The notes beneath the pieces are model-generated. The model was not told the DNA's origin, did no database searches, and saw nothing but the letters and a program-made list of their open reading frames with translations. From Chara braunii (lineage: Eukaryota > Plantae > Charophyceae), in NCBI GenBank assembly GCA_003427395.1, contig BFEA01000030.1:5141894-5205893 (forward strand): a DNA stretch of 64,000 nt. The letters run 5' to 3'. Below, one piece after another: positions 4,967 to 56,600 of this stretch. Positions within the stretch are counted from its first letter, which is position 1. Each line of letters opens with the position of its first letter. The position numbers and the translations under genes are program-made.

Positions 4967-7900
4967 CTAGCTAAAGGTCACGGAGTCGTCGGCAAAAGCT
5001 TCAGTTTTAAGCCGTTGACTAGATGACAACAAAAAGTCGGGGATATGGAGGTTTGGCCGAACATTCGAGTGCATTATCTCCGTGTACAAGACGTACAAAT
5101 TCGGCGCGACCAGGCAGCCCTGATGCACCGAATGCGAGAGAGTGAGGGGAGCATCCAATGACCCATTAACACACAAACAAAGGGACGAAGCTCTAAACAG
5201 AGCCGCCACCACCCTTTTGAAGTTAAGGCCGAAGCTAAAGGTTGATAACGTCACTTGCAAAAATTCTCACCCAACACGATCGTACGTTTTTTTCAAGTCA
5301 AGAAAAACAACCGCCAACCCCTGAGGACCACTCGCCACCAACTCCGGAAGCTGCTCAACAAGCATAATATTATGGAGTATTTGTTGACCCTGCAAGAAAG
5401 CAGTTTGGGAAGGATGGACCAGCGCTGGCATCACTTTTTGCAAGCGGGATTCCATAAGTTTGGCAAAAAGTTTATAGAACACCAGCATCGGCATAATCGG
5501 GCGTCAATTGCACACATCAGATTAATCGCCTTTTGTGTACAACCCCCTGCAACTGATCCTCATAAATGGGAACCCCATGCCATAACGAATTCATGATGCA
5601 CAGGAGGTCCGGGCACAAATAGGGAGAATTTAAAAGCGTTTAAAAAAGCAAGCCGGTAGGTTGTCCAAACCAGGCGCTCTATGGGGTGGTTGGCCCTGCA
5701 AGCAATGATAGCCTCATGCATAGATACGTCTGCTTCCAATACACACATTGGTCCGCAATCAAATGGTGATCCAAAGTCGACCATAAAACTTGACCAGAAG
5801 TTGTTATTCAGTATGTTGTGCCTGCGAACTACACATAGGGAGAGTTTTAAAGCGTTTAAAAAAGCAAGTTGGTAGGTCGTCCAAACCAGGCGCTTTATGG
5901 AATGGTTGGGCTCTGCAAGCAGTGATAACCTCATGCATAGATACGTCTGCTTCCAGCATCACACGTTGGTTCGCAGTCAAATGGCGATCCAAAGTCGACC
6001 ATAAAACTTGGCCAGAAGTTGTTATTCAATGTGTTGTGCCTGCGAAGTCAACAAGGAAGCGTAGAAATGTTTGACATACAAACCAATCCTCACGGTGTCA
6101 ATCGCTATCGGGGCATTATCGTCAACGGGATGGCGCATCAGAAGCATCAGTTGACTGTTGGCAAGCATCCTATGACCACGAAAAAAATGGGTCATCATCC
6201 AGTCCCCTTTGACCAACAAGATATCCGTTTTCTATTGACCGTCTCCCGAATTTTAGGCAGGGCAGTCAATATTCAGCGCCGCCGCACAACATCCAAGGCC
6301 TGCATGAAAGCTTGCTTATCCACCCTGACCGTCCGAGCTGTTGCAAGCACTGCAGCTAGCTCCGCTTGCAGAGAGTCTTGAACCGTTCTTCGGGCATTGC
6401 CCAAAATCCAGGCTAGTAGCAAGGCATGGGCCTGCACCATCTGCAACCCTCCCGCATTCAGGTGGAAGGACATGCCAGCCTCCCTCCATTTCAGTCATAA
6501 ATCACTCATAAAGGTAGTCATGGCTTGGATAGAATCAGCCACTTGGGAATCGAGCGAAAGTCATATTTCACACGAACCAATCAGTGCAAGTAACGTTCAA
6601 CAAATAATCCGAGTCGTTGTACGATAAGTCAAAGCAACGGGAAAGTTGAGGGAACAACATATCATCCACCCAAAACAAGTTTAGTATGAGGGATGCATTG
6701 CTGATTCACTGCTTCGGAAGCAAACCATGTATAAGCCCGCTCGTATGGGTGCAGGTATCGAAAAACGTCCGTGAAGTCGTAGTTGGCTCTAAAAGTGGAC
6801 AGGGTCACCGTCGCACCGCATCCACGGTGGGTGGGTCTACTTTCAAGTTGGGACTGTCCAACCCAAGACGCAAGGTAGTATTTGAATCCCCCCCATTGTT
6901 AATCGATCCACACGAGGCACAACCAAGGCAAGGACCGAAAGAACTCTAACCGGTTCGGGAGAGAGTGAGGTGCATAAGCATTAAAGACCGCCCAATCCTC
7001 CTCCTTTACCCGAAAATGGACCCAGATCCAGCAGCCAAGATGGTCCCAATTGTAGCCCGTAACACGGTCACGGTACGGAAACGAATGCTCAAACAAAAAA
7101 GCCACTTCCCCCTTCGTTCCTTGAACAGGCGCCTAAAGGTCGAACCCAGACCATCAACCCTTTTGTTCGACCACTGCTAAAATACCGCGCTTCGTTTCGT
7201 GCAATAAAATGATATGCAAACCCTTATTTTGAACCAATGTTTTTATGAGGGATTTTTTCACCCCAATCCGGCGGGATCCGAGTCCTCTAACATTCCTTGA
7301 TACTAATCGAATCCTGTTCATATGTACTATGCAGGTTGCGGGTTTCAGTCTCATCACTCAAGTTTCAAGAAGTTATTTGGTAAAATGTTCTTGTGCCATG
7401 GAATGTGTTCCTCCACTTTCGTCAAAAGAACAACATTCCAACAATCATATATTTTGGTATCTGTCGCAATTTGGCCAGCGTTGTTCTTCACCAGGGACAA
7501 TGACAGCCATCGGAGGCCCGACAAAGCAGTTGGAGCCCGAACAACAAGCTTAGCGACCACATCAACCACCGGAAAGTACAGGATATCAGTGCGACACTAG
7601 TCTGTGGTTGGAGTAAGTTGAACCCACTCAATCTCAGGAAACGACCGAATTTTGTATGTCGGCGTCAACCATTTACCAATTTTTCTGCCAACCGTTTCGA
7701 TGGTCGGGACCTCATGCACTTTGAAGTGTGGAATCCTTAAAACCTCTTTTGTTGTAACCGCTGCTAAAAGCTGCAGCTGTCTATCAACTGCTGTGAAAAC
7801 AAAAGGAATCACAACACAGAGCATCCCCTCCTGCATTGCCTCCAACAAGGAGGTCGGGAAAACATCAGCCCTTCAAGTCGGCAGCAACGTACGATCACTC

Positions 7901-9550
7901 AGTTCCTGTTGGGGCTCTGGGTGGGCTGGCTGAATGTCATCATTTTCCTCAACATCGGCCTAAGAAACCTTACCAAAGTCACCCAACCATTCCCGAATAG
8001 AGCCGTAAGGTTGAGGTTTGCTTGACTTGGGCCCCTCTGACAGGATTCCTATGCAGAGTCGGGCCTGGGCCTTTCTGCAATGGCATAGATTCCTGATGGC
8101 CTGGCACTGTAGGTTGCGCTTCAGTGTCCTAAGGTGCCAGAGGAGCAGAGGTAACCAGCGGAGGAGGCACCACTCCCAGTTGACTCCAATATGGTGCCAA
8201 TGAGGCATCCAATGATAATAGGAACACACCCGGTGCAGCGTTAGACCCAGCGGTCAAGGAGATGGTCGCCGGATACGATACAACAACTACCGGAGACTGC
8301 TGTATAGAAGCAGGGAGGGGCGAGGTGACCATGGAAACAAAGTTGCAGCAGGCGTAGATATTAATGGTACCACCAACGCCGACTTAGACACTGCAGGTTG
8401 TAACACTCGAGGCCAGGGGCACTGTTGTCGAGGCCGACCCAAAAGCGGTTGAGTAGGACCACGTAGTGGACGAATCGTTTGTGCTAACATACTTGGGACA
8501 ATATGAGGTCCCAGACGTATGGTTGTATCAACGACATTCGGTGCACCAAGGGGTGTCCTTAGTCTCAACATCCACTTTAGCCCAACCTTGAGGAGTACGA
8601 AACTTAAGCGAGTGACTAACCCGGGACCTAGCCTCCACACGCAGATGCAAGGTACGAGACTATGTGGATGCAAGGCGGAAATCCTATCCCAATTCAACAA
8701 TAACCATTTAGTGCGAACGAGGTAACTGCACCTGGACCCTGAAACAGAACCATCACTCAGTACCTACGCAAATAATCAGCGTTGTCGAGCGCATCAGCTC
8801 CCGCCTTTAGGGAGCCCTCCTGGCCATCTCTCCTGCATGTGGCTTTGCAGGCCCTACCTGCCTCTTTCTTCTCTCATAGCAAGTTGCCCGTCCATAGCTC
8901 GGACGGGTGCCTCAGGCTATAGCATCGTTTTTCAGGCCTTCGGTACGGAATGGAATCCCGCAGACCGAATGATTAATAAAGGTAAATAAATAGGCACCCG
9001 TTTTCGTCTGCGCCACGACCCCATACCCAGCGCGGTTGTTCGTTTTAGCCTACTGAAGCTCTGAATCGCACGGCTGCATTATCTTAGGTAGAACAGGTCT
9101 AGTTCTAGCATTTCCGCATTGACATGCCTCGACAACCCTGCTAGAAACTGCCGACTACCATCATTACTCTTGGACACCACAAGCGTTCGGACTAAAGTTC
9201 GAAAAAAAAAATCAGTCTCTCGATCATAGGCGAGTCTGAATAAACTTTTGGCAAACGTCGGTATAGTCCCTCAATTCAACGAAAAAATCGGACAGCGTTC
9301 GACATTGAAAAACCCTGAGCAGATACCCTTGTAAGGGTGTCTGCTCTGACACCGTGTCCTTCGCCCCGGGCTTGATCAGCTTCCTCCTCTTCGGATAGGA
9401 AGCATCGACGCAACATGGTGCAAAACTCCTCCGACGCACCTCCCTCGAATTGAGAGACCATGCACGGGAGGAGCTCCCTACAGTCGAAAAGCCCCCCAAA
9501 TTCACACAGATGGTATCCGCCCAAAAAGCAACAAACCACCTATAAACCAG
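4967..9550 (-). mobile_element. Decayed L1/Tx1-like LINE (possible ORF1, APE endonuclease, RT), truncated just after the FADD motif
   Basis: Frameshifted fragments in the expected order: VSRNVRGL...ILLHETK and FNAYAP (APE); KAPGLDD; LVHPSQTAF...FLDLKKTYDRV; VHQGCLVAPNLY...AFADD. Internal ~220-bp duplication near 5630-6040. The 5' boundary is approximate. Confidence 0.85.
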
Positions 9551-11914
9551 CAAGTCTTTCGAAACCGCACCGATAAAGCATGCTTATTCAAGTAAACAAG
9601 AAATTGAAACCAAAAGAGCATAAAATCAAGGGCAAAACAAAATCCGCAAAAATATTCATGTAAACAAAAAATTGAAACCAGCCGAGCATAAAATCAAGGC
9701 CAAAACGAAATTCGCAAATCCACTCACAATCATGAGTTACCCAACGATCAGCAACACTGGTAGCACGCTGTGAAAACTCAGCCAGTTATTGGGCGCACAG
9801 ACGTGTCCATCCAAAGAAGAAAAACCCAACCCACGAAGAAGTCGCACGGACCAAGATAACAGTTGGCAACCAACCAAAAACTTGAAGGAAAGTGCGGAGG
9901 AACTAGAGATCTTCCTTGATTCTTCAATAAAGGTCGTACGCTGCAAAAAACAGGCAGAGTAGGGATAACAACGGTCCGGGGTCATCAAAGCAATGAAAAA
10001 GAGTTAACCCAAGGAAAGAGATCTTAACAAAAGAAGGGTCGACAATGGAATTAAAGGAAAAAATTCAAACGATCGGAGGTCTCACCCCAAATCGTTCGTG
10101 GAACAGTTCGATTCCACGCTGTCAAACCAGCGAGGCCTCGAATCATTTGTAAACCGATTCAGTTTCACCCAGTCTGGCAACAATTCGGCCGGCATCAACT
10201 TCGCCCACAGGGAACACTCATATAACTTGGTCGAGGCAGTCAGCTGAAGATATTCATTCAACCTCTATAGGAGTCAGTGGTCATAGCAACTCAAGCTAAT
10301 GTCCTCCCAATCCCAACCTCTTCAAAACATCACACCCAGCCGTCCACACCAAGATTCACAACACAAAAGCAGAAGGAAGGCGTTGTAGCTAACTAGGACT
10401 CGCCACTATCTCCACAAAAATGTGCGCATGTGAGTATGTGTAAATGCATACAGTGGTCATGCATGTGCAACACTCGTGTGCTTCACAGCATGGATATCAT
10501 TGTGATCACATGTGATCTTCAACCTGACAGGTGTATGAAAAGTGATGTTTACATGAATGTGTTTGTGTGTAAGTACAATGAAGTATCTACAAGTACGCAC
10601 ACAAATGTGCGTTCTCATACATGTGTGTGTGGGTATGCACGTGTGTATGAACATGTTCCCACAAAAGCACCATAAGGCTGAAAGGTCTTCAACCACCAAT
10701 CATAACATCATGCATAGCGAAGCAGGGAATGTCCGAGTCATGAAACCTCACAATCACCACTAGAGTATTTTTTGTGACAATCACCGACAATAGGTAAAAA
10801 AACATTATGGACAAGCGGGTACTTCCGTCACACAGCAGTCGCAATCACCAGCCGCGTATTTACCGTAACAATCACCAGCAACAAGAAAAAATCACCGCCT
10901 TACCCGGAATATCACCAGCCACATGAACAAGCAACTACTCCCGTCGGCAAATGACGGCAATAACTGCAGGGCCGCACACACTAGAGTTACATAAATCAAC
11001 AAGCAGGTCGGCGAGTAACCACGACACCTAGCAGTGACAATCACCTTGCCACTCCCACGATTCCAAGCGGACAAATACGTACCTCCAACGATGAAAGGAG
11101 GCAACAATTGCAGGTCTGCACCCACCTGAAGAACATGAACGTCAACAACCAGCCCGCCAAACAATCTTCCCACATAATAGCATTAGTCACCTCGCAGCTC
11201 CCATGAGCGAAATGAACCGCACTAATTGCCTTTACCACTTGCGAACGTCACCCTGAACAGGAGGACAAGGTAGCAAGTAACAATCCACACCCACCGCTGA
11301 TCCCCTTATGTAAATTGTCGACCCAGCAGGCACGCGCTCCACAAGACTACAACATCAATTCCCCGTATCCACGTGGACTCCAATGGTTGGGCCTATAGCA
11401 GGTTCCCCGCACTCCACCGCTTCCACACGGACTCCAACAACCAAACCAATACGTAAGCGCCCCACTGACTAACATCAATCACCTTACCGCTCACACGAAT
11501 GAACGCTGACCACACTGATCACTTCAACCACACTCGTCAACACACCGCCGCACATCAACAACACGACAGCCACATCACCGAACACTTACTAGCCACAACC
11601 AACAAACAGCCTCGCTCCCCACATTTCGTCTCTCACACTCTCTCACTCCCATTCTCACACACGACCGGTTTCTCATGGCAAAATAAGGAACTAAAATGTC
11701 TCTGTATCTAACGACCGGAGGGGCTATCGCCCTCCCGATCAGGTTGAACATATGGTATGTCGCCGCTATCCAACCTCACCCGTTCGTCTACCCCACATCA
11801 ACGCATCATCCAACAATGCCAACAAGGAATCCCATAATCATCAGGTTGAGGTCAACCATCATAGCCGAGAGCCCGTCAGGATGTCGTTGAACCATCGCCT
11901 CTCCTAGCAACAAT

Positions 11915-27116: not shown

Positions 27117-27486
27117 TTTTTTTTTTTTTTTTTTTTAATTTGGACCATTTCTCGGTTTATGCGTGTCTTCAAATGTATAGATATAATTTTTCAGGGTATG
27201 CATCGTTAAGTGCTCTAGTACATTATCAGTGGAAGTTTAAGATGAAGAGTCGGAGGGTCCCCAGCTCGTCTGGGACCGTAAGCTAAACCGGCTGTTGCTG
27301 CCGGGATAACCCCGGGTGGATATGTGAGGACCCCGGCCTCCTGTTTTGATTTGTTGTTAATGAAAGCAGTTATTTCAACAAAAAAACAAAAAAAAAGAAA
27401 AAAATTATGCGTGTCATCCTTGCGCAGGGGCCATGCTAATCTTCTCTCTCTGAATCGTTCCAATTTGAACGGATGTCCCGAAGGAC
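27117..27486 (-). pseudogene. U6: Full-length U6 snRNA retrocopy with poly(A), split by a later insertion
   Basis: 5' part 27486-27405 (GTCCTTCGGGACATCCG...GATTAGCATGGCCCCTGCGCAAGGATGACACGCATAA). 3' part 27170-27137 (...CGAGAAATGGTCCAAATT) then A20. ACAGAGA box altered. Confidence 0.92.
27171..27404 (+). mobile_element. Retroelement 3' tail with A-rich end inserted into the U6 copy
   Basis: 14-bp TSD TTATGCGTGTC(T/A)TC. Homologous copy with A tail at ~58630-58760. Confidence 0.8.
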
Positions 27487-27526: not shown

Positions 27527-27558
<32 letters not shown>

Positions 27559-28191
27559 AAAGCTACCTAGGGCTAGGGGGGCCAAGTCCCAGTTGAGTTT
27601 TTCTTCAACGCCTGAATCTGGACGTGTCTGGCAGCGTTGAGCTTTTCACGGCTGAATCTGGACGTGTTTGTGAAGATGCGCGGTTGAGTTTTTCTTCAAC
27701 GCCTGAATCTGGACGTGTCTGGCAGCGTCGAGTTTTTCTTCAACGGGTGAATCTGGACGTGTTTGTGAAGACGCGCGGTTGAGGAAACTGCACGCGATTT
27801 CTGCACACTTCCACAAAGACGTCCAGATTCAGGCGCTGAGGGAACTCAACGCTCCGGGCAGTTCGATGATGATATCTCAAGGCCGCATCAGATGCAGTAA
27901 TTAAAAAATATATATATATATATCCGATGGATACGGTAGTGACCTATCCACGCAGGGCACAGCCCTGCAAATAGCCTTAGGAGTAGTGGTGGGCAGTGAA
28001 AGGAAAAAAATATGCTTCTTCAGTATCTTTGCCCCTCTGCCGTCGATTTCAAGGGTGTAATGAAAGTCGGAAAATAAAATAGAAACGAATCTATTAGATG
28101 GATACGGTGGAAGAAGGTGCGTGGCCATGTATCTCTTCTGCCCACCTTCGGTTTGGAACCGGTCGGAGACGTCGGTGCCAGCCTGGACCAG

Positions 28192-29772: not shown

Positions 29773-30014
29773 GAGGAAGGTTTGCCTTGACGTTCCTCAA
29801 AAGGAAGTGGAGTTTTTTTTTGTTTTTTTTTTTTTCCCACTTTTGGGCGAGAACTGCAGCTATTTGGGGAAAGACAAACAATCAAACTGCAGCTATAGCT
29901 GCTATACTAACGGACGTATCTCAGTTGGTACACCCATGCACTATTGAAATACAGACCGGAGTTAGAATCCAGATGGACAGAATAAAATAATTCTTAATTG
30001 ACCGGTAAAGCTCA

Positions 30015-30626
30015 GGGGTGGACCCCACTGCTCGGCGGCTGGAAAAAGTGGTTGGCCAGAAAAAGCGGTGGAAAGACGGCGGAAAGACTTTGGCGGGTTT
30101 CCATGGGACCCCACCGCCAAAGTATTTCCAAAGCTCTGGAAACAGCAAAACATACCCGAAAGGGAAAAGTTGGAGGGTCCCCCCCCCAAAAGGAAAGTTG
30201 GGATGGGATTGTGGTGCACCAAATTCGTCCGTCGCTGGACCAGGACACACAACGGCCCACATCGGAACTGTGCGACAGGGCAGTGCATGTCCGAGGGGGC
30301 TTGCCCACCCATGAAACGGTCCGCCGTGACGTGAGCTGGACCATGCTCGCTCGGCATCTTCTTTCCACAGGAGAACATGGCCCCCCCCCCCTAGTCGGTT
30401 GGAAGGCCTTTCTGGAAAGGTCATGGAAGGCCGCGCTGTTCGGTTTTCAGGCCACCAACCGTGTAGAAATGCTTCTGACACCTTTCCGGCAACGTCCTTC
30501 CACGGTCTGTGGGGTCTGAAAACCCTTCCAATTCTGAGTTTCCATCCTCTTTTCCAGATCAGTGGAGTCCCAAACACACCGGCCTGGAAAGAAATTTCCA
30601 GGAAGCGGAGTAGTGGGGTCCGACCC
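30015..30626. mobile_element. 612-bp non-autonomous Harbinger-like element
   Basis: TIR GGGGTGGACCCCACTGCTC / GAGTAGTGGGGTCCGACCC; TSD TCA. Confidence 0.75.
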
Positions 30627-31321
30627 TCAGTCATGTGACCTCGAAGCCGTCGCCCCTCTTTACAAACAAAGAAAAAAGGGAAAAAAAAAAAAACAAAAAA
30701 AAAAAACCCTGCAGCTATTGGCTCTTTCATCCGACCTCCATTGGCATAGAAATATGTCAATTAGAACCTACCCTACATTGTGCACAACATGTGATAAGAA
30801 ACTGCGCTCAGATACTACCTCTGTGCTGAAATGACAATGTCACACGGGAGGCAAATTGTCTGGGACCCACACGGAAGGCAAAAGACCAATGGCCGTCCTT
30901 TTTTTTATTTGTTTGTTTATTTGTTTAGAGCACTTTCTCTACTCGTACTCTCTCTACCCATACTCTCTCTACCCATAGAAGTCACCTCCTCCTTTGTTAG
31001 GGAACATCCGCACGGCTTGAGAAACGGTTCAGGACCCATCGCGAACAACAGCAAACTTTGCTGGCCTAAAAAATCACATTTCTTCAATGCGGACACAATA
31101 ACGATCATAACAATCTCCTCGTGTAAATCCCATTTCTTCAATGCGGACACAATAACGATCATAACAATCTCCTCGTGTACCCGAACCCAATAAAATGGGG
31201 GGTGCCTTTCCGTTCTTGGGCCGCAGATACCGGGGGGCCTACCTTCTTTACCCGAAGAAGAAATCGTGCGCTCATTATACAGGTATCTAGACTGAAATGT
31301 AGCCCAAATTCAGCTGTAGTG

Positions 31322-32848: not shown

Positions 32849-33353
32849 TTAATTAAGAAGGTATCGGTCAATTAACGAGTTCATGAATTATCGAGGCTCG
32901 TAGAGTGGCCCGAAACCATTGCCCGAGAATTTCGACTTGACCCTAGGGAAAAAGTTGTTCAGCATATTTTTCTGCATAACATTTTTTTTTCCCGTCTCTT
33001 TTGGATTTTTTTGCCCTTTCCTGGCTGGCCCGCCCGGGCAACCAAGACGACCCCGCAGCCCAGTTGGTAGCCCAGTCAGTCGAAGTTATTGAATTATTGG
33101 ATTATTGAATTATTGAATTAATTATGGCATGTGATCGAGATTAGTCACTTGTGGCCCTAACAAAACTAGTGCTCTGTAAGCGCCCCAGATAAGGCATCCG
33201 CCCCAGATAAACTACCCAAAGATAATTAATAAAGCGCCCATTGGAACTGTTTGTAAGAAACCATTCTAACTAAAGATATAAATAAAGATACATATAGTGC
33301 CGGAAAAGTGAAAATAAGGCCTCAACCATACATATCGCTCTTCGTTTCTAGTG

Positions 33354-33438
33354 TACGGCTAGCGGGACTCGAACCCACAAGGCGCGAAGCGCCGCCACAT
33401 CCTAAGTGTGGTGCGTAAACCAATTTCGCCATAGCCGT
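33354..33438 (-). tRNA. trnL: tRNA-Leu(UAG), organellar/bacterial type, inside the NUMT
   Basis: Acceptor stem ACGGCTA/TAGCCGT, anticodon arm CCACA-CTTAGGA-TGTGG, long variable arm, GGTTCGAGTCC. Confidence 0.9.
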
Positions 33439-33583
33439 TTCTTTCTGGAATATGTATACAAGTTAGTTGCCTGAAAGGAGTATAAGCATGTCTACCCCAC
33501 TTCGTGGCCTTATGGGTATAGCAGGATTTGAACCTGCGACCATTAGGTTAAAANAAGCATGTCTACCCCACTTCGTGGCCTTA

Positions 33584-33649
33584 TGGGTATAGCAGGATTT
33601 GAACCTGCGACCATTAGGTTAAAAGCCCAATGCTCTACCAACTAAGCTA
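33584..33649 (-). tRNA. trnK: tRNA-Lys(UUU), plant-mitochondrial type, lacking ~7 nt at the 5' end
   Basis: TAGCTTAGTTGGTAGAGCATTGGGCTTTTAACCTAATGGTCGCAGGTTCAAATCCTGCTATACCCA closely matches plant mitochondrial trnK as recalled. Partial duplicate at 33513-33553 next to an N. Confidence 0.88.
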
Positions 33650-33895
33650 AAAAAAAAAAAAAAAAAAAAACGAAAAACAAAACAAATACAAAAACTTGTG
33701 GCCCTTGGCATGTTTGCTGGTTTCTAATCTCATGGAAGCCTTGGGCTGTGGGCCCGTTATAAATGGAAGACTTTGGAAGTGGATTTTGGAATAATAATAT
33801 AAAAATTAAAAAAAATCTATAAAATAATATAATAATAAAAAAATATTTAGTAATAATAATAGTTAGTAATAAGTTACTAATAACTAATAAATATA

Positions 33896-33990
33896 TGAAA
33901 CTCCGACGAAACAGTTTGTCACAGCCCCTCGTTTGTTGTCCTCTTCTCCCTCTCTGCCTACGGTTTACCGGGCAGTTCTATTTGACGATA
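33896..33990 (+). repeat. 5'-truncated copy of the hammerhead-bearing short element
   Basis: Near-identical to 22984-23078, flanked by (TA)n. Confidence 0.8.
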
Positions 33991-34278
33991 TATATATTGA
34001 CGATATATATCACAAAAATAACTGTCGTAATAATAAATGCCATAATAAATCAGTTGCTCTGCAGAATGGATACTCCAGAGAGGCATTCCGTTCTATTCAC
34101 ATCTTTTAAGGGCTTTTTGGCAGACATCTCAACTATGGGGGTATTTTGCAAACCCTAATAATAAATAATATAATAACAAATTAACAATCAATAATAAATC
34201 AATAATAAATCAGCTGCTTAGTTATTCACCCTGTTTTTTTTTTTTTTGTCTTTTTTGTTTTGTTTTGTTAATCTGCAG

Positions 34279-35400: not shown

Positions 35401-36405
35401 CAAATTTCAAATGTTTTTAGGATGGGAAGGAGTAGGTCTCGCATCATATTTGTTAATTAATTTTTGGTTTACATGACTTCAAGCAATGACGTAAATGTGT
35501 CCTTGTTGTGGTCGGTGATAAAGCATAGTCAGTCATGATCAACAAACGCTAGACACATAGCCGCGACATGCGCAGTGATCATATGTGAAACTCAATCTCG
35601 AAACCTGAGTTTAAAGAAAGACAGACATGAAGCTCATTTCACAGCTTCAGCTATGACTCCATAGCTTCAGCTATGACACCTCCGTCGACTGAAAGAATAG
35701 AGTGGCGCTCAGACCGAGGCGCTGGCATCCCCGACTAGTTTCGGTCGCTGCCAGTTAGCGACCTCATCGGCGGGTGGTTCGAGATTGTTGTGGTCATTGT
35801 GTGGTGCCATTAACCGCAGTTAAAAGCACCAAACACTCCTAGCTTATGACGGCCGATCGCCTAATGGGCGCCCGGGACAACAGCAGCCTAGCTTATAACA
35901 AATTTGATTATAATATTACAACTACAAATTTCAAATGTTTTTAGGATGGGAAGGAGTAGGTCTCGCATCATATTTGTTAATTAGTTTTTGGTTTACACGA
36001 CTTCAAGCAATGACGTAAATGTGTCATTGTTGTGGTCATTGTGTGGTGCCATTAACCGTGGTTAAAAGCACCAAACACTCCTAGCTTATGACGGCCGATA
36101 GCCTAATGGGCGCCCGGGACGACAGCAGCCTAGCTTATAACAAATTTGATTAAAATATTACAATGACAAATTTCAAATGTTTTTAGGATGGGAAGGAGTA
36201 GGTCTTGCATCATATTTGTTAATTAATTTTTGGTTTACACGACTTCAAGCAATGACGTAAATGTGTCATTGTTCTGGTCATTGTGTGGTGCCATTAACCG
36301 TGGTTAAAAGCACCAAACACTCCTAGCTTATGACGGCCGATAGCCTAATGGGCGCCCGGGAAACAGCAGCCTAGCTTATAACAAATTTTGATTAAAATAT
36401 TACAG
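35401..36405. repeat. ~242-bp tandem repeat (about 3 units) in ADK intron 2
   Basis: CAAATTTCAAATGTTTTTAGGATGGGAAGGAGTAGG at 35401, ~35926 and ~36168. Confidence 0.9.
35514..35784 (-). mobile_element. 271-bp insert with 11-bp TSD and a minimal type I hammerhead motif
   Basis: TSD TTGTTGTGGTC at 35503-35513 and 35785-35795, single in the sister repeat unit near 36027. On the - strand: CCGATGA-GGTCGCT-aactggc-AGCGACC-GAAACTAGTC-GGGG. Confidence 0.75.
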
Positions 36406-36565
36406 TGAATTAATGAAATTAATAATTATGTATGGCAAAACTCAAGGATATCAGATTATCTGTATCTGTACCTGGCCTGAAAAACTCGTGCCGAATACTC
36501 CTCTACTTGGATTGGCAGTAATTGTATCCAGTGTTGTTGGAATTTTATCGATGATGTGTTTACAG

Positions 36566-39545: not shown

Positions 39546-39715
39546 TTGGGAAACAAACAAGAAAAAAAAAAGTGATCCACGAAGGTGTGCGTGAACTCGT
39601 TCAGAAAATTGTTCAGGAAAAAAAAAAAAAAAGAAAGACTTTTGAAGTTTGAACCACCACTACTTCCGATCCTGTTTTTACCGGGCCTGAATTTCAATGC
39701 GTAGTGCGCACCAAG

Positions 39716-39820
39716 TTTTTTTTTTTTTTTTTTTTTTTTTTNTGATCCGATGGGTCACGGATCAGATGTTAAACTGATCAGAACAGATACTACACTTTAT
39801 CTTAGCCAAAAGGCCGAGAA
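39716..39820 (-). pseudogene. U2: 3'-truncated U2 snRNA retrocopy with poly(A) and TSD
   Basis: TTCTCGGCCTTTTGGCTAAGAT.AAGTGTAGTATCTGTTCT.ATCAGTTTAA.ATCTGAT followed by poly(A). TGCGCACC(A/G)AGTTTT on both sides. Confidence 0.9.
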
Positions 39821-40008
39821 TTTTACTGCGCACCGAGTTTTGTCGAGCCTGGGTCCCAATGTATTTTCTTTTCTGGTACTCTACGGAAATGGGAAAAAAA
39901 AAAAAAAAAAACGAAATAAAAGGAAAAAAGCAAGTAGTAAGCTGGGCACGTGAAAGCAGCTGGAGGGCGTTACAGCCTACAGCAAAACACGGCTCTCTAA
40001 AAAACAAA

Positions 40009-40722: not shown

Positions 40723-43546
40723 AAAAAGAGAAGGGGAAGAAAAAAGTGCAACAACCCTTTGACCGCAAAAACAGTTAGATACAGAATCTTTTTTTTTTTT
40801 TTTTTTGTCGAGAAGATACAGAATCTCGAGTCCATGTGAGGTTGGAGCTCCGTTGGTCGCAAGTGTCAGATCAGATGTCCGTGGAAAGTCCTGCCTCGTT
40901 GGCAGGGCAGTAAAAGAAAAAGAGAAGAAGAAAAAGAAACAAAAAACAAAAGAAAAAAAGAAAAACAGAACACTAAAGAATTAATACAATAATTCTGGGC
41001 AGATGCATTCCTGGAAGCACTACTGTGAGCACACCTCCTTCACCGCTTCTCCACCACCCTCCAACGTCCTTCCTTTCAAATATGCAGGCCCTCCCTTTTT
41101 TTTTTTTTTTTTTTTTTCCCCCTTTCGTCTGCAACCGTCAGCTGTCCGTGGAAAGTGCCCTGCCTCGTTGGCAGGGCACTAAAACCAAATGAGAAGGAAA
41201 CAGCAAAAAACAAAACAAAACAAAACAAAAAAACAGTAAACGAACCACGCCCAGATTCTGGGCAGATGCATTCCTGGAAGTACTACTGTGAGCACACCTA
41301 CTTCGGGCCTCGCTGCACTACTCTTGAAAGGTGCAAAACGAGAGTGAATCTTCTGCTAGAACATGGAAAGACACAGCGACATGATTTTTGTCTTTTGTGC
41401 ATTTCAAGAGTCGTGCAGCGAGGCCCTTCATGGCTTCCCCCCCGACGTAGTTCCCTTTCAACTGGGCAGCTTCTTTTTCTTTGTTTTTCGGTTGGGCGCA
41501 TTCTGGTTTATTTTCTGATTTTATTTTATTTTTACTTTTTTTTTTTATGTGGGTGAACTGATGGTAATGATTGGTGGTGGCTGTGGTTTGTGCAGTGTAC
41601 GCCAGTTGAGGATTACTACCGAAGCAAAGGGATTCTGCTTGACTTCGACGTCCTGGGTGGAATACCGCAGACGTGGCCGCATTTGCTGGAAACGCTGCAT
41701 CTTGACGGGGCAGTGGCAGAGGAGTCGCGAGCGGCCGCCTAGCGGGGATGGAGAAGGGGAGAGGGAGGAAGTTTCCTTCCTACCCCATGCATACCCCCCC
41801 CCCCCTGTTCTCTGCACTTTTGGACTTCATCAATTTTCTTTTTCTCTCTGAGATCTGGGAGAAAGGGAGAGGAAGGGTGCTTTCCCCCTCCCTTTCCCCC
41901 CTCCCCTCTTCCTGTGTGGTCTTTTCCCTCGAGGCAATCTGGTGCGAGGGTAAGCAAGTGTGGGGTGGAGACGTGGCAGAAGGAGAGGTGTTGGAATGAC
42001 CCCATAAGGACCCCTGTTGATGAAGTGGGGTAGTAATGACCCCTTGGGCGAAAAAAAGGAGGTAGTACTGACCCCCTCTCTGGCAAAAAAAGGGGGTAAT
42101 AATGACCCCTCTGTTAGCTTACGGGCTACGGTGGTAGATAGGCTAAGTCGGGCTACGGTGGTAGATAGGCTATAAGTCCAGCGTGAGGAACGTCAAAGCT
42201 CTGGTGCTGTTTTGTGGGGGATGAATGTCATTATCGAATCATTGCCCCTTCTTCTCCCTTCCCCCGCCCTTATCCCTCCCCCCCCACCCCTTATCCCTCC
42301 CCCCCCATAAAGGAGTGCGAGGTGTCGAAGGGCTGGTCTTTTCATCTATATTGATGCTTGTGAGGACTGCAGAGTAGTTGGCAGGCAGGTTGCTAGTGTG
42401 TCGCACTCTCGCGGCACGGTATAGTCTGTTTGTCACTTCTGCTGCTACTGTGAGCTGAAAAATCCACTGCATCACAGCCAGAATTCCCGCAAACGAATCT
42501 GGCTGACATTGCGACCAGGTTCTTCAGTAGATGAGGGCACACTAACACTAGCACTTTTCAGCTGAACCTGGCTAATATCACGACTAGGTACCTGCGGGAA
42601 GGTTCTAGTGCGAGGATGCCCTTGTTCGAATGGTGGTGAGATATTCTTCATGTACTCCAGCAGTAGCAGCAGCAGCGGCAGCAGCAAACATCATTGCCGT
42701 CGTCATCGGAGCTATCTTCATTGCATTCATCATTACGCCGCCATCTTCCTCGTCGTCATCACTGTTATCATCATCGCGATATCGTCGTTACGTCGTCATT
42801 ACGTCGTCATCGTCATCGTCGTTATCACTGGCATGATCATCTCGATATCGTCACATTAGTGAGTGTAAAGCGGCGACACCTGGCGGGCGCTACTCGTACC
42901 CGAGTTACTGCCGGGTGTCGCTACCGATTCATTCTTTATCCGTTTAGAGGAGGTTGAATTTGTTGCCATTCTTTGTGCATCGCTCCATTATGCAACATTT
43001 GGGAAAAAGATGCACCTGGACATGGAAATGGTCCTTATGCATTCAAAATGTTGTGTCAGTGCCAATGAATTTGGTGCATCAAACAGTCCGGATACTTGTC
43101 GAATCTGTCGAATGTGGTGGTGGAGCGAGGCCCTTTTTCCAGATTGGTCTTGCTGATCTGGCATTCCGGTATTTTGATAAGTTTCACTTTTTCGAAGTTT
43201 TTTCTTTGTTTTGACAAGTTTTACTTTTAGGATATATACACGCTCTAGAATTTTTTCTTTCGATCGAACTCTGGATGCGATTGCAGTCAGGTGCATCCAG
43301 GTCTGGCCGTAAGTCCAATCAGATATGCATTTATAAAAGTGCTAGTGTGGTTACGGCGTTAGAAGCTTTTAGAACGTTTTGGTAGCAATTTGTTATTGGG
43401 TGCTTTTTTCTTTTCTTTCCTTTTTTCTTTTTTCCTTTTTTTCTTCTTTTTTTTTTTTGTTGGAAAGAACAGGTCCATTCGAATTTGGAGCCCAACTCCG
43501 TATCCATTCTGCGGAGCATTATTTCAAAATAGATCAGATTTCTCTC

Positions 43547-47340: not shown

Positions 47341-48941
47341 TTCTGTGGATTTCATTTCTTCAGTGTTTCCATGTTTTTGATGAGGAAAGCATGCACTTCT
47401 CCTGAATAGAACGTACAGTCAATATCGCTGTATATGGACTGAAATTTGCCCCGAATACAGCTGTAAGGACAATATATTTTTATTTTTTTTGGTTATGACA
47501 AGATGTTCTATCCAGGGGAAGACGGTAGTTTCTCCTCCCTCCCTTTCCCGCTGTCTGTTTGTCATTTGATTTGCTCGAATGCGTCAGCGCGTCGAGATGT
47601 GTATCTCGGCTTGGTCCATCTCTCGAAGGCGCAATCTATCTAAGATTTTTTATTCATTTTCGTATCCTTCTACTAGATCAATCTATTTATACATCACAAA
47701 GATCTTTTTTTTTTTTTTTTTTTTTTAATTTATTTACATCACAAAGATCTCAATTCGAAGCTATCTGAAAATTTTGTAAAGGTAAGAAGCTTGGTCCACC
47801 TCTAGAAGGCGCAATCTATGTAATCCGTCTTTTTGTCTGTTTGTTTTCCTTTTTTTTTTCCTTTCTGTGGTTCGTTCGTTTTACAGCTTGCGGATGTGAT
47901 GACAGTGCTCTGCTCTTCTCACTGTGCTTATCGTTTGGAGCGTTGTTGGGGGGAGGGAGGGGGAGGGAGGGGGAGGGCACCGTGGGGGGCGATGGAGATC
48001 TTTTTTTGGGTTGGGTTGGAAGGCGGGGAACACGCTAATGCTGTGTCTACGACAATTGACTGTTGCGTTGTGCGTGTCATCGTTATGCACAGGGGCCATG
48101 ACAAACTTTTCCGTATCGAGTTTTGTGTGTCGTATTTGTGCACAGCGGAAGCTACATGGTGTACGGCAGTCGCAGTGTTCGTTTGGTCTGTGTCTTATTT
48201 TATTAAAAAAAAAAAAAAAAAAACCAGAACCGTGCAGTTCTGGCTCCTTTCCATTCTGGGTGAGCGTCACTCCGGTTCCTTTTCCACTGGCAAGTAAATA
48301 GTTAAAAAATAAATAAATAAATAAATAAAAATTAAAAAAAAATCAATAGGATCAGCAGTTTTCACAATTCTGTTGTGGATATAGCAGTGACATTGTTCAG
48401 GGTATTCTTAGCTGAAGCCGGGTCAATAGCACTTCGTGTCCAGCATGTGTTGCTGCGTGCCTGGAGAGGCGTTTGTAACATTGATTTGCTCCGGTCTCAA
48501 AATGCTCTACATATGTTTTCAAATGGGATGCTGGGCCCGGTTCCCAGCACGTGTTGCTACCCACGAATAGATCGGAGCACTTTTTGTTATAAAAAAAAAA
48601 TTGCGTGTAGGGATGCGCACATACTGTGCGCTCAGCTACACAGACCTGGCAGTCACTCCGCTCATTTCATTCCCTTAGGTTCTTGGATGGTCCTGGATTT
48701 TTTTTTTTTTTTTTTTTTTTTTATATTATATTTGGTGTCTGCTTTCTTACACACAAAAACACACACATGCACACGGGTTGGTGCGGGTAAAGCTGACCAC
48801 TTATCTCAGGGGTATAGCTATCTCTGGCCGGCGTGGTGACTCCTTTTTCGTCAGTCAAATGCATCCTGGGCAGTGCTTTTTCTTTTTTTGGCGTCTGCTT
48901 TCTTACACACAAAAACACACACATGCACACGGGTTGGTGCA

Positions 48942-50662: not shown

Positions 50663-53600
50663 GAGGAAACTACAGTACCCAAAAGAGGTTATGCTCTCTG
50701 CCACCTGTTGGATTGGCAGAAGAGAACTGGATCGGAAGGAATTTTGGGAAATGGCAGGGAAAGCAATAAATAAATTAATGGGCTGAACAAATGGGGGTGT
50801 GCTGTCGGCCTGTTTTTTGTGTGCTTGCTTTGGCATGACTGCTGCTTTGCCTCTACAACCAGCGGCGAACTGTGTTCCGGAATCTAGGTCATGTGCTGGC
50901 AAAAGCAGAAGCCGGTCTCTGGAGTGACCAGAAGTATGTCACCAACGTCTCCCTGCCACCTGTCGCGATGACAACTGGGTGTCTTCCCTGTACCTGGCGG
51001 ACTACATCCAAAGTGCGTCCGCAAAACCTGGCATACGGATTGAAGTCTTGAGTAGACCGTTGATGCCCTGGCACGGGGACAGTTGTTACCGTATTTTCTG
51101 GATGTTTTCGAGAATTTCTTTTTTCGGCGCCCCGAAGGGCATCTGAGGTTCTGTAAGGTAGGATGAGGGGTAGATGGATAATTGAACAGGCGGCCGGGGA
51201 CGGCCATGCAACGTCATACCGTATTTTCTGGATTTTTTGAGAATTTTTTCTCTTTTTTCGACGCACCAAAAGGGCATCTGAGGTACTGTAAGGTAGGATG
51301 AGGGGTAGATGAAAAATTGAACAGGCGGCCGTGGACGGCCACGCTAAGTCGGAGCTCGTAGAAGTGGTATAAATCAATTGGCTGTAGTATTGCCAATCCT
51401 CAATCTGAGTGGCGAATGAGTGTAAGGGTTGAGTTCTCGGCAGGGTGCGTCGAGAGTGACGATGGAGAAGTGGATTACGTCATGATATTAATGCTCATGT
51501 CTTCTTCTTCATAATAAATATTTTATTTCTCTTGACCAGAGCCTAAGTTTCAACCTTGCCGTGGCTTGGGGTGCTGTATCTCGCTCGAGAAACGTGCATC
51601 TTCTTTGTATTTGTATTTGCATTGCTTACATATGATTTCACCATATGTTTTATCCATTGATCTTAAAATCTTTAATCCATTTCTTTTACTTTATGTCATC
51701 AGGGTGTTATCTCGACGTATCCGACTTGTCTTGTCAATCACTTTAACTGCGCAAATCCGATAGAGCGCTTACCTGTGGGCAGGTGTCTCATGAAGGGCAC
51801 CGTGGTCCGAAAGGAGGGGCGTGCATTGACAACTAGAAGCACGAAGAGTTGTACTGAAGGGAATTGAACACGTATGGCTTAACATATTTGACATCCTTCG
51901 GAAGGACAGGCAGGTCTCCTACGAGGTCAACCTCCACATTGCAGGAAAGTGGAGCGTTGGGAGTTCAGAGTGGACAGTGGGAATTAGCCTGTGCTGTATA
52001 TTCCTCTCCTACGTCGCCTTCGATTGTGTACGGACGGGGGCGCGGTGGTCGAGCGGGGGGCCAATCGGGAGGTGGAAAGGAAGGTGGAGTGACTGCGGCC
52101 GGTACTGTGGGGTAATACCGGAGCAGGGCAAGGTGCTACCAATGGAGACCGGTGGTAACCAAGGGAGTGGCCAAGCAAGTGGCCTCCAAAACGACCATCC
52201 TACTGCGCACTCGCAGGATGGCCAGAAAGGTCCGGCTGCTAATGCGTTTCCAGGACCTGGCAACAGAGCTTACTTCACAAAGGAGTATATGGATATTCTA
52301 GAAAGCATCAAGATTAACAAGGCTATCGAAGAAGCTCGAAAGAAGATCAATGGGAACCGCCGAGGCGGTATCTGCATAACGGAGAACAGGGAGCAGCCAG
52401 AACCACCAGTACCAAGAAGTGCTGACAAGAATGAAGAACTCAAGGCCTGGGTTACAACTACCCTCGGAGATTCACTGAAGCAGCTCACCGAAAAGTTGGA
52501 GAATGTAGACCAAAAGGCGAAGCTCCCCGCCGGAGAGAAAGCCGAACTGGAGAGACTGAGAGCGGAGAAGCATGAAGACAAGGCAGACCAGGACCCATCT
52601 GGCAGTGAAAAACGCAAGAGGGCGAGAAATCGAACACCAGCGAAAGCATCTCCGAAACCTTTGCGCGCGAAGGAGCGCTCGCGTACCAATGTGAAAGCAG
52701 CTACCCGATCCAAGAAAAGGATCAAAGTATCGTCGGATGAGGAGAGTGACGAGTTGGGGAAGCTTAAGCAGAACTTGGAGAAGAAAATGGAAAGTAGCAC
52801 GGAATTGGCGGAGATAAAAGGGATGCTCATGATGTTGATGGGGGAGAGGGAAAAGGAAAAAGGAAAGTGCAAAGTAGAAGGAAAGGACCAGGGTTGCGAA
52901 ACGAAGGTCGAGCATAGCGAGGTTACGAAGGACAATGGTTTTCGAGCGCATGTCACCAGCGAGGAAGAAGACGAAGGCGGCCTTGCGATGTATATGAAGC
53001 TCCGATTAGACTTTTATAGCTTCCTGCACTATACGCACGTCCAGGATCTGTGCAAAGAGAAGGACATCACATACTACCGCCGTCTACCGGAAGGAAATCG
53101 GCGCGTGGGAACTGGCAAAGATCGACCTCCAGGAGTGCGTGGATAGCCTGGAGCAAGCCAAGCCTACCCAAGCAGCCGAGTGTTCCAGAGCGAGAGAAGC
53201 AGACGCAACTTCCCGAAACTCCGATAATCCAGACGCAACTTCCCGATAATCCGATAATCCAGACGGAGATGGATCCGATATCGGGAAACTAGTCTACGGC
53301 AGTAAGCGCTCGTTACTGCGTGCCGGAAATAGACTGGCTAAACTGAAGTCAACACTGGGAACGGACTATGCGGACGCATTGAACCGGATTCACTTGCTAA
53401 TGATTTTGCTTGCTTGTTGTAAGGGAGATATAGCATGAGGAAAAAATTTTGTCTGATATTGGGTCAGATTTGATAGCAAGGATTGGGGTCGGTTCTTGGA
53501 TGCTGACAATTGTGTGTATTTGCACCTCTCCTTGAACCACAAACTTACATACATTGGGAAGACAACGAGAACTCTTCGGGAAAGATGGTCTGAACATCGT

Positions 53601-56600
53601 CGAGCCGCTTGTGGGAACAGTAAACAAAAAATGCACAACTGGCTTCGCAAAGCCGGTACAGATCACTATGTACCTATCCGGAGTTGGTTTGGATCCGAGC
53701 GCACCATCGATGAGATGGGAAAACAAATAATCGGTAGCCATAACCCTGGACTAAATCTCAAACACACCAACAGAAGGAACCACAGCAGAAGAACTCGTAA
53801 GCAAACCAAAGGTAAGCGAATCGTTGTGGATAGCATTGTGGAACCCATTCCATTTGATTGTCCGACTTTGAACGTAAAGCATCATCCTGATTTGCTGACT
53901 GTGTTAAAGCTATTATAGAAACGAAAGTTGAAAAGTAACCAAGGATGGGAAGTATCCAACAATCAAGGTGCAAGATGGCTTAAAGCCTGGAGACTAGTGT
54001 GTCTACTCTTCGGGTTCACAAAAGTTGAAAAGAATGGGGTGAAAATGTTGTTGAAAGATGCGAAGTTGCAGATTGAAGAAGGGAGAATATGGAAGATTAC
54101 AGATTTGAAACGGTCAAGAACGAAGTCAGATGTTAAAAAGAGGAGTTGATTGCACTTTTCAAGGCCCCCTGAAAGCATAAGGACTTGTACAGACTGAGTT
54201 CAGTCGAACTAATTGAACTCAATAACAATGGAAAAACAATAAAAGAGCGTGGTGGTAGACAAATCATCAGAGGTATCTTAACCAACGTCTTCAAAAAGAA
54301 GTTCTTAATAAATCCACGTGTAAATATAACTGTTAAGATTCCCTTTTGTACCACTGTAGACAAAAAGAAAGTGGAAGGCTCAGTGAAGGATTGGATAAGG
54401 GGAAATATTTTGCCTACCCCGCTTGGTGAGTTGCATGCAAGAAGGACGCGGGCAGTATGGTTGAAAGCCAAGTCTGTCGGCGATCTTCTGCATTACCAAA
54501 AATCATTTGCACAATGTGGCAATTTTCAGTGCACGTGTGCTGATTTTGACTTGCCCAAGATTAATGGGCATGTAGCAGTCAAACTAAGTGAGGCTCCTGG
54601 GATACATCCATTTTTGCACAATGCAAAGAACATCCCCTTCTCGGGCACACTGGCCTCAAAGGAAGCAGTATCACAAGCTTGTAATGATGCACTCCAATGC
54701 ATGCATCAAATGAGGTTGACAACTCGAAGAATGAATATTGACTGGACTGGGTCAGGAAATCGGGGGAAAAGATGAAGGAGGGTTGTGTCCTGAATGAATA
54801 TGTATAAGGAGTCTTCTCGGCGTTGGAGGGACTTGTGATGGCCCTACTGGACCGTAACAACAGTGATACCTGGATTGAATGCACGAATGTGTATTCAGAT
54901 GGTCTCAGAAAATTGTTTGTTGAGAATGATAATTACCTAAACCTGAAGCAAGATCCTATCTCATCTCTAATTGAGATTACGAAGAATTACATGGAACAGG
55001 GGTTGCAGAAAATTACCCGATGGGACAACAACAGGACCCTACAGCATGCGTACATCCTTGCGAAGGAAAAAGACAAAGCGAAAAGAAGACCAATTGTCAC
55101 GTCGTACGCAAACCCTTTCAGAGTTGGCTCTGGCCTGCTAGCCACCGTATTAAATCACCTAATTAAAAAGATAAAGCTGATACACTTTAATTTGAACTCT
55201 ACGATGCAGCTCAAAGGCGTGGTTGAGGAGATTAACTCCCAAATGGTAACATGAAGGAAAAATATTTCGGCGAGGACCTATGATATCACTGAAATGTTCT
55301 CTCAACTACCCCACGAGGTAATTCTGGATGCAGGAACTTGGATGTTTGAGCATTTCCATCAAAGATCTAAAAAATGGATCCGAGTAAAATTGCGTGGAAA
55401 AATTGTCTCTTTTCGAAAATCCCACGGGGAAGTAGGGTGAGGCTCCGTCCGGTTACAGGATCTCATAAAGCTGACCTCCTTCCAGCTGCAGAACTGCGTC
55501 TTTCGGGTGATGGATTTTGTCCTTTGTCAAAGAAAAGGCATCCCGATGGGAGGAAGGGTCAGTCCCTCCCTTGCCAATGTGATGTGCATGTACTCTGAGC
55601 ACAAGTTCCTGACAGCACTGGGAGCAGATGCACGGTTTATTACCCGGACGCAAAGGCTCAGGCCGAGAGCAAATTAGACCGGATTTATGAATGCTACCCA
55701 CCGGATCTGATTATAAAAAGAAAGGACCCAGGCCTGGGAATATTGGATTTCTTGGAGACACGGATAGTGATCTCACCGAAGGACTCAAACTTGATCTTAA
55801 GTCACAAATTCAAAAACGCACATACGATTTGGGGTGAGGGACAACTCAAATTCAAGACCCTAAAAAATTTCGCATCTTATGGGCCTAAGGTGGCTGAGAA
55901 TGCGATTGTGGCCAACAACTTACTACGGATCTCGATGAACACGAATTCGGACGCGGCCACCCTATGGAGCGTCCTCACCTATTCAGAAGAAATGAGGAAA
56001 CTACAGTACCCAAAAGAGGTTTTGCTCTCTACCACCTGTTGGACTGGCAGAAGAGAGCCGGATCGGAAGGAATTTTGGGGAATGGCAGGGGAAGCAATAA
56101 ATAAATTAATGGGTTGAACAAATGGGGGTATGTTGTCGGCTTGTTTTTTGTGTGCTTGCTTTGGCTTGACTGCTGCTTTGCCTCTGTAACACAACCAGCG
56201 GCGATCTGTGTTCCGGAATCTGGGTCATATGCTGGCAAAAGCAGAAGCCGGTCTCTGGAGTGACCAGAAGTATGTCACCAATGTCTCCCTGCCACCTATC
56301 GCGATGACAACTGGGTGTCTTCCCTGTACCTGGCGGACTACATCCAAAGTGCGTCCGCAAAATCTGGCATACGGATTGAAGTCTTGAGTAGACCGTTGAT
56401 GCCCTGACACGGGGACAGTTGTTACCGTATTTTCTGAATGTTTTCGAGAATTTTTTTTTTCGACGCCCCGAAGGGCATCTGAGGTTCTGTAAGGTAGGAT
56501 GAGGGGTAGATGGATAATTGAACAGGCGGCCGGGGATGGCCATGCAAAGTCATACCGTACTTTGTGGATTTTTCGAGATTTTTTTCTCTTTTTTTTGCGC

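Follow-up and report, generated by a model that had tools for sequence, protein, structure and literature searches.

The 64-kb window analysed here, the whole stretch of Chara braunii contig BFEA01000030.1 under study, contains at 33147-33705 an insert that carries two tRNA genes of mitochondrial type, ends in an A-rich tail and is bracketed by a perfect short direct repeat. We find that this insert bears the footprint of target-primed reverse transcription, and it was probably inserted from an RNA template by the machinery of a long interspersed element (LINE), whichever donor supplied that RNA. Our tentative reading, which we favour but would not yet call probable, is that an A-tailed antisense RNA from the mitochondrion gave rise to the insert as a chimeric processed retrocopy. 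Read evidence comes from a comparison of a 1701-nucleotide (nt) query with contigs of public runs, including the DNA runs X1 and X2 and the high-depth run X6; in this comparison, positions 33638-33697 were masked as a repeat. The parts of the insert, from left to right, are as follows.

33147..33158, no strand: left copy of the target-site duplication, ACTTGTGGCCCT; exact repeat, crossed by a nuclear-depth X2 contig (32950-33175)
33159..33217, plus strand: 5' part of 59 nt, not colinear with the mitochondrial donor; the X6 contig diverges before 33218
33218..33352, plus strand: mitochondrial-type non-coding stretch of 135 nt adjoining trnL, at which the organelle-depth match begins (X6 contig)
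33353..33438, minus strand: trnL(UAG), intact, mitochondrial-type, 86 nt (ARAGORN; Rfam tRNA, 55.5 bits over the full model)
33439..33512, plus strand: spacer between trnL and trnK, 74 nt, under the high-depth X6 contig
33554..33624, no strand: assembly artefact of 71 bp, an N and a second exact copy of 33484-33553 (self-comparison; contig joins)
33584..33648, minus strand: trnK(UUU), intron-less, mitochondrial-type, tRNA positions 8 to 73 (Rfam; alignment to contig L001, described below)
33649..33693, plus strand: tail, A22 at 33649-33670 followed by a 23-nt A-rich heteropolymer at 33671-33693 (read from the sequence and, being masked, with no read check)
33694..33705, no strand: right copy of the target-site duplication; exact repeat, from the sequence only

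Footprint and anatomy of the insert

We count two exact copies of the 12-mer ACTTGTGGCCCT in the entire window, compared to a mean of 0.22 matches in a shuffle control that permitted up to one mismatch. The two copies of this direct repeat are identical at 12 of 12 positions and are placed at the exact ends of the insert, and their size is inside the 7-20 bp range of LINE retrocopies; the first A of the 12-mer could equally belong to the tail, and thus the duplication is 11-12 bp long. The 45-nt tail lies on the strand antisense to both tRNAs. The perfect duplication and the pure A22 argue for a recent event. We found neither a paralogous empty site nor a second copy of the insert within the window.

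The tRNA genes define where the copied sequence stops. A 22-mer from the trnL anticodon arm has an exact match in one metagenome contig (Ga0316217_10000471, 57.5 kb, here L001/L002) and none in IMG/VR, while for a 22-mer from the trnL-trnK spacer JGI metagenomes and IMG/VR gave no exact match, and two open reading frames (ORFs) of 36 amino acids in the mitochondrial part of the insert have no database record. L001/L002 encodes cox1 with LAGLIDADG ORFs, atp4, atp8, ccmF, tatC, rps4, nad5 and nad4, and is a mitochondrial genome. Its likeness to the insert is restricted to the tRNA genes and its gene order is different; therefore, it gives no information on synteny. The trnL(UAG) of the insert is identical to that of L001 at 69 of 83 aligned positions, and trnK at 59 of 65 positions (the Rfam match of the trnK(UUU) fragment is 33592-33649 on the minus strand, model positions 8-63, 50.8 bits). 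The trnK of L001 starts with GGGTATA-TAGCTCAGTTGG, and the copy in the insert starts at the TAGCTTAGTTGG part, with the tail replacing GGGTATA. The insert lacks exactly this 5' acceptor strand (positions 1-7) and retains the 3' acceptor strand with which it pairs, and therefore the copied sequence ends at tRNA position 8. An A-run at the acceptor strand would be impossible in a working donor trnK, and hence the tail would not come from the donor; the only basis for placing the A-tract outside the donor is tRNA structure, that is, the acceptor strand missing relative to L001 trnK. A tRNA-derived short interspersed element is ruled out by the wrong orientation of the tRNAs, both of which are antisense to the tail, with the trnK fragment at the 3' end rather than a same-sense RNA polymerase III head at the 5' end. 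As an observation on the comparison contig itself, which is from an unidentified eukaryote, L002 6662-9802 holds an unsplit ccmF-like ORF of 1046 amino acids, and tatC.

The assembled insert is longer than the true one. Positions 33484-33553 and 33555-33624 are 100% identical 70-nt copies, 71 nt apart, with one N (33554) between them, and in nuclear-depth contigs of both X1 and X2 position 33544 is joined to 33614. The 71-bp duplicate is an assembly artefact, apparently an unmerged overlap from gap closing, and should be collapsed, leaving an insert body of ~419 nt plus the 45-nt tail. Assembly gaps in the window tend to adjoin homopolymer tails (single N at 33554 and 39742; N runs at 12400, 13877, 22029 and 45014), and exact overlaps, such as the 70 nt at 33554, may hide behind single-N gaps and artificially lengthen features.

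Within the one duplication we find two parts of different origin. The first ~17 nt of 33159-33217 are at single-copy (nuclear) depth, under the contig that crosses the left junction. The following ~42 nt (33176-33217) have a summed depth in the thousands and are common to at least eight X2 contig variants that diverge after 33218, which fits a piece of a dispersed repeat family; this 5' part may also have been copied from RNA. The 59-nt part has no Rfam match and does not resemble L002, and a local origin is ruled out, as it has no other copy in the window. Among other candidates, a group I or II splice junction at 33217/33218 was rejected on reasoning, because intron-end motifs misfit the loose-end sequences, and twin priming or 5' inversion is ruled out because the whole mitochondrial part is colinear and adjoins the tail.

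An initial annotation, made from the sequence of the window, had described a perfect 12-bp target-site duplication, an intact trnL(UAG), a plant-mitochondrial-type trnK(UUU) and an A-rich tail at 33649-33693 antisense to the tRNAs, with the insert ending inside trnK. The duplication and trnL stand as described, the sequence and the tRNA models agree on the tail and end point, and trnK is indeed of mitochondrial type, as a truncated copy. The length given there, ~490 bp, was inflated by the assembly duplicate, and the segment, taken to be mitochondrial throughout, is so from 33218 but not over 33159-33217, where the X6 contig diverges. The foreign 5' part, the assembly duplication and a set of nuclear-depth copies with 3-5% divergence (described below) had all been overlooked.

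Organelle depth and antisense RNA

The mitochondrial origin of 33218-33648 is supported by organelle depth, by a colinear contig and by the resemblance of the tRNAs. The colinear contig, from X6, is 1338 nt long (depth 113.8). It agrees with 33218-33553 at all positions but one (33310 G/T) and continues to the left of 33218 into sequence unlike the window, while the nuclear flanks have a depth of 0. Both G and T at 33310 are far above nuclear depth in X1 and X2, and therefore represent an organelle polymorphism. Summed contig depth over 33227-33625 is ~11,000-38,000 in X1 and 4,000-11,000 in X2, but is ~7-37 in the adjoining flanks, a gap of roughly two to three orders of magnitude. Small runs of the organism and several soil and rice-paddy metagenomes contain ~0.24 of the words sampled from the 1701-nt query, a fraction that corresponds approximately to the size of the insert alone. 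The G+C content of the mitochondrial part is 42.8%, compared to 40.9% for the Chara vulgaris mitogenome. Streptophyte plastid trnK carries an intron; a plastid origin is ruled out, since the trnK of the insert is intron-less and its closest relative lies in a contig with cox1, nad4, nad5 and ccmF.

A nuclear location of the insert is supported at the left junction, where the X2 contig that covers 32950-33175 has a depth of 16.9 and comes from a second sample. Nuclear-depth sequence is also found inside the mitochondrial part: many short contigs with a depth of 12-29 align to parts of 33218-33544 with a divergence of 3-5% from the window, and therefore older nuclear copies of this mitochondrial region exist. 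Several of these contigs are ~61 nt long, which is the length of single-variant bubbles.

In organelles, relaxed transcription of both strands, rapid decay and RNA antisense to tRNA genes have been documented (PMC5009733), and polyadenylation-assisted RNA decay has been described in Arabidopsis mitochondria (Holec 2006, as cited in PMC5009733). We examined the oligo-dT RNA-seq run X21, the strandedness of which was read from the neighbouring hammerhead unit: first mates there number 365 on the plus and 2123 on the minus strand, and therefore X21 is stranded, with first mates opposite to the RNA. Over 33341-33625, X21 contains plus-sense RNA, antisense to the tRNAs, at a depth of 0.6-0.9 across trnL and the spacer, which becomes 5.6 and 8.2 in the two bins with the duplicated trnK end, adjoining the tail site. 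These plus-sense reads carry no variant letters and the depth over both flanks is 0. A short plus-sense RNA with an A tail that ends near the tail site, and no transcription of the nuclear flanks, would be expected to give such a profile. The check proposed in the initial annotation, for antisense A-tailed reads at trnK, is thus answered in part, in that plus-sense RNA rises beside the tail, while the tail stretch is masked and A-tailed reads fall outside the X21 view.

Apart from the insert, the reads reveal two further features. A nuclear-depth trnK variant over 33590-33636 (33620 T>G, 33627 C>A; depth 14-18 in the DNA runs) is an expressed trnK paralogue elsewhere in the genome, and its letters appear in the RNA run in tRNA-sense reads only (9 of 13 at 33620 and 9 of 12 at 33627). 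The hammerhead-bearing unit at 33896-33997, with CTGATGAGTCGG at its left edge and a CTGATGA core on the plus strand, has a summed DNA contig depth of ~3-4 million, compared to ~10 for unique DNA, and a strong, strand-biased oligo-dT RNA-seq signal; many back-joints of ~100 nt suggest tandem or circular forms of this unit.

Local insertions, mechanism and rival explanations

Other insertions in the window, identified by a script survey and direct reading (for the U2 small nuclear RNA (snRNA) copy, by Rfam and direct reading), provide a local standard for the footprint.

29854-30719, plus strand: non-coding element of 816 nt, tail A-rich, duplication of 11 bp, CTGCAGCTATT (survey)
39743-39825 (extended, 39696-39825), minus strand: U2 snRNA retrocopy, 3'-truncated after ~83 nt, then A26 (Rfam)
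40777-40825, minus strand: poly(A)-only insertion, a perfect 12-bp duplication around 7 nt and A18 (survey)
47690-47749, minus strand: poly(A)-only insertion, a perfect 15-bp duplication around 8 nt and A22 (survey)

The U2 retrocopy adjoins a single N (39742) and has an imperfect duplication of ~14 bp (AAACTCGGTGCGCA / AAACTTGGTGCGCA). The poly(A)-only insertions are extremely 5'-truncated or aborted products of target-primed reverse transcription. The 64 kb contain more than 35 A or T tracts of at least 18 nt, many of them pure. Target-primed reverse transcription of A-tailed RNAs is therefore commonplace here, with 11-15-bp duplications and at targets that are not rich in A/T; indeed, LINE-type insertion of assorted A-tailed RNAs, including truncated structured ones, is routine. 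The insert under study carries the same signature. Thus, the LINE-type retroposition footprint claimed in the initial annotation is shared with local insertions, while the capture of a mitochondrial decay intermediate, claimed along with it, is a step that we infer.

We propose the following sequence of events. L1-like LINE machinery, which would be very active in this genome, may have nicked the target with a stagger of ~12 bp and reverse transcribed an A-tailed RNA, the last ~360 nt of which would be complementary to mitochondrial trnL(UAG)-spacer-trnK(UUU), and the end of which would be the complement of trnK position 8. As the template, we consider an antisense or read-through transcript from the mitochondrion most likely, after trimming and oligo-adenylation. 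In a template switch, 59 more nt would have been copied from an unrelated RNA of a repeat family before the product was joined to the upstream end of the target. As a wider proposition for this alga, A-tailed mitochondrial decay intermediates would reach L1-like ribonucleoproteins and be reverse transcribed into chromosomes with template switching, and part of the nuclear mitochondrial sequences (NUMTs) would be RNA-derived; we regard this wider claim as possible, though doubtful.

A number of observations speak against the proposed retrocopy of a mitochondrial antisense RNA. The insertion target is ...TAGTC/ACTTGTGGCCCT, which differs from the A/T-rich TT/AAAA type of human L1; the insertion enzyme here seems to be less target-specific, as the targets of other local insertions are not A/T-rich either. 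A heteropolymer makes up the distal 23 nt of the tail; A-rich mixed tails also terminate LINE-like elements elsewhere in the window, and, as a speculation, the reverse transcriptase may have primed on an A-rich mixed tail and then jumped to the A-run. Folding of the plus strand ahead of the tail is unremarkable (z-score -0.49) and no structure accounts for the 3' end; a structure-defined RNA 3' end is therefore unsupported. The first 59 nt are not mitochondrial, which requires an additional step, and colinearity of the donor across the tail site is presumed, not read from the mitochondrial genome of the species. The right junction (the tail, the right repeat and the first ~100 nt of flank) has no contig cover, because 33638-33697 was masked as a repeat, and no contig spans 33683-33796. 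The interior of the insert was probably gap-filled, and thus its identity to the mitochondrial haplotype may stem from mitochondrial reads. A 369-nt contig with a depth of ~7 has 4 differences in 33454-33544 and, if colinear, would reach the start of the hammerhead repeat; this contig might be the true locus, with the assembled interior filled with mitochondrial reads, and if so, the youth of the insert body is unproven. No ORF for a LINE reverse transcriptase or endonuclease was found among the 89 ORFs of at least 110 amino acids in the window (Pfam). Finally, a mitochondrial RNA would have to meet a LINE ribonucleoprotein.

These points have to be weighed against what other explanations offer. 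In one of these, which we consider unlikely, the template was a nuclear transcript: RNA polymerase II would have started in the dispersed repeat and read into an older NUMT, and the transcript would have been cleaved, polyadenylated and retroposed by a LINE, so that the RNA route led from nucleus to nucleus, not from organelle to nucleus. Such a transcript requires no template switch, since the multi-variant repeat at 33176-33217 abuts the mitochondrial part without an A-run, and LINEs usually use nuclear RNAs, as in the U2 copy. The initial annotation had named this alternative, and the diverged 12-29x contigs over parts of 33218-33544 keep it alive. However, the assembled insert has the organelle-depth haplotype rather than that of the diverged variants (an argument weakened by gap filling), the plus-sense poly(A)+ reads have no variant letters, a canonical AATAAA signal is missing upstream of the tail, and no contig was seen that joins the repeat to the mitochondrial part at another locus.

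A hybrid event is distinctly unlikely in our view. Here, a LINE insertion would have been aborted while still copying the poly(A) tail of an ordinary RNA, and end joining would have patched the 5' side with extrachromosomal DNA fragments, a mitochondrial piece among them, so that the mitochondrial part came as DNA. This explanation draws on the fact that abortive events are frequent here, as seen in the two poly(A)-only insertions and their duplications of 12 and 15 bp, which also counts against the antisense retrocopy; moreover, at least two or three unrelated pieces make up the 5' side, and DNA filler has arbitrary orientation and ends, making an antisense RNA unnecessary. Yet nothing separates the tail from the mitochondrial sequence, while 7-8 nt of the primary template are retained in both local abortive insertions; plus-sense poly(A)+ RNA piles up just upstream of the tail site; and two rare processes would be required at one site. 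Very improbable is an assembly artefact, by which mitochondrial reads were drawn into a scaffold gap and something else lies between the 12-mers. The single N with a 70-nt exact overlap inside the insert, the ~100-1000 times greater depth of mitochondrial over nuclear sequence and the lack of a contig over 33683-33796 would all be consistent with this, but nuclear sequence meets the insert in each half of the assembly, with the 12-mer present independently in both, the left junction is spanned by a nuclear-depth contig of a different sample that extends into the insert, and in the right half the trnK fragment runs unbroken into the tail and flank. The remainder of our belief is left to an explanation that we did not foresee.

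The window contains further features apart from the insert. The only Pfam match in the 89 ORFs is a GIY-YIG domain (53457-53915, plus strand, E-value 8e-7), and the ORF that carries it is probably from a Penelope-like element; the 438-codon frame upstream of it (51830-53143) is lysine/glutamate-rich and has no Pfam match. A full-length U6 snRNA match (76 bits) is located at 27382-27486 on the minus strand, downstream on its own strand of a T tract at ~27527-27561, and a tandem repeat of 242 bp (2.6 copies, 96% matches) extends over 35784-36408.

Relation to known systems

Whether organelle sequence reaches the nucleus by a DNA or an RNA route has been argued for three decades, and the case for RNA has been based mostly on edited or spliced sequence. 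The footprint of target-primed reverse transcription on a mitochondrial insert would give the RNA route a countable signature, and the insert described here, if we are correct, would show that in the green lineage organelle sequence can move to the nucleus directly through RNA and leave a footprint. If instead the donor was the transcript of a nuclear NUMT or captured DNA, then the locus is no more than what hyperactive LINEs ordinarily leave behind. The main value of the locus is as an entry point to a genome-wide test of RNA-route NUMT formation; since this genome retroposes almost any RNA, the question is testable genome-wide.

Conventional NUMTs resemble the insert in that they are non-coding mitochondrial sequence in the nucleus, possibly mosaic, but they arise by end joining of DNA captured at double-strand breaks and have neither a poly(A) tail nor a 12-bp duplication. 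For legume cox2, RNA-mediated transfer was reportedly inferred by Nugent and Palmer (1991) and Covello and Gray (1992) from an edited sense coding sequence. In both cases an RNA would be the intermediate between mitochondrion and nucleus; cox2, however, has no insertion footprint, while the insert has the footprint but no coding sequence or editing sites to read.

The retropseudogenes of snRNAs and the U6-L1 chimeras are similar to the insert in being truncated, structured non-mRNA sequences with an A tail and a 12-15-bp duplication, and the U2 copy 6 kb away is an example. They differ from it in that the template here is organellar and the 5' partner is a piece of a repeat, not a small nuclear RNA. 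Chimeras of two RNAs within one duplication are said to have been explained by Buzdin et al. (2002) and Doucet et al. (2015) as template switching by the reverse transcriptase.

A class of template is suggested by the antisense, unstable, A-tailed RNAs of plant mitochondria (Holec et al. 2006, in PMC5009733). In the account given there, such RNAs are documented in Arabidopsis organelles, with no nuclear escape shown; in the alga, the strand-biased X21 reads would be their counterpart. Our text search of the literature on NUMTs with the marks of retrotransposition returned nothing comparable for plants or algae, which does not prove absence.

The closest precedent is human. Retrocopies of mitochondrial RNAs with poly(A) and target-site duplications, mediated by L1, were proposed in 2023 as an alternative route to NUMTs (retroSeeker, PMC11727581), and thus the idea put forward in the initial annotation has a precedent in human loci. 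Like the insert, these are nuclear mitochondrial sequences with a poly(A) region and flanking duplications. However, the human cases are sense copies of rRNAs and mRNAs, and animal mitochondrial mRNAs are normally polyadenylated, whereas in the insert the copied strand is complementary to two tRNAs and stops within a tRNA, the 5' part of 59 nt is foreign and the host is an alga of the green lineage, in which organellar A-tails mark decay. The kind of insertion is therefore already known, a processed retrocopy and possibly a template-switch chimera; what is unusual here is the antisense strand that was copied, the end point internal to a tRNA, the chimeric 5' end and the lineage.

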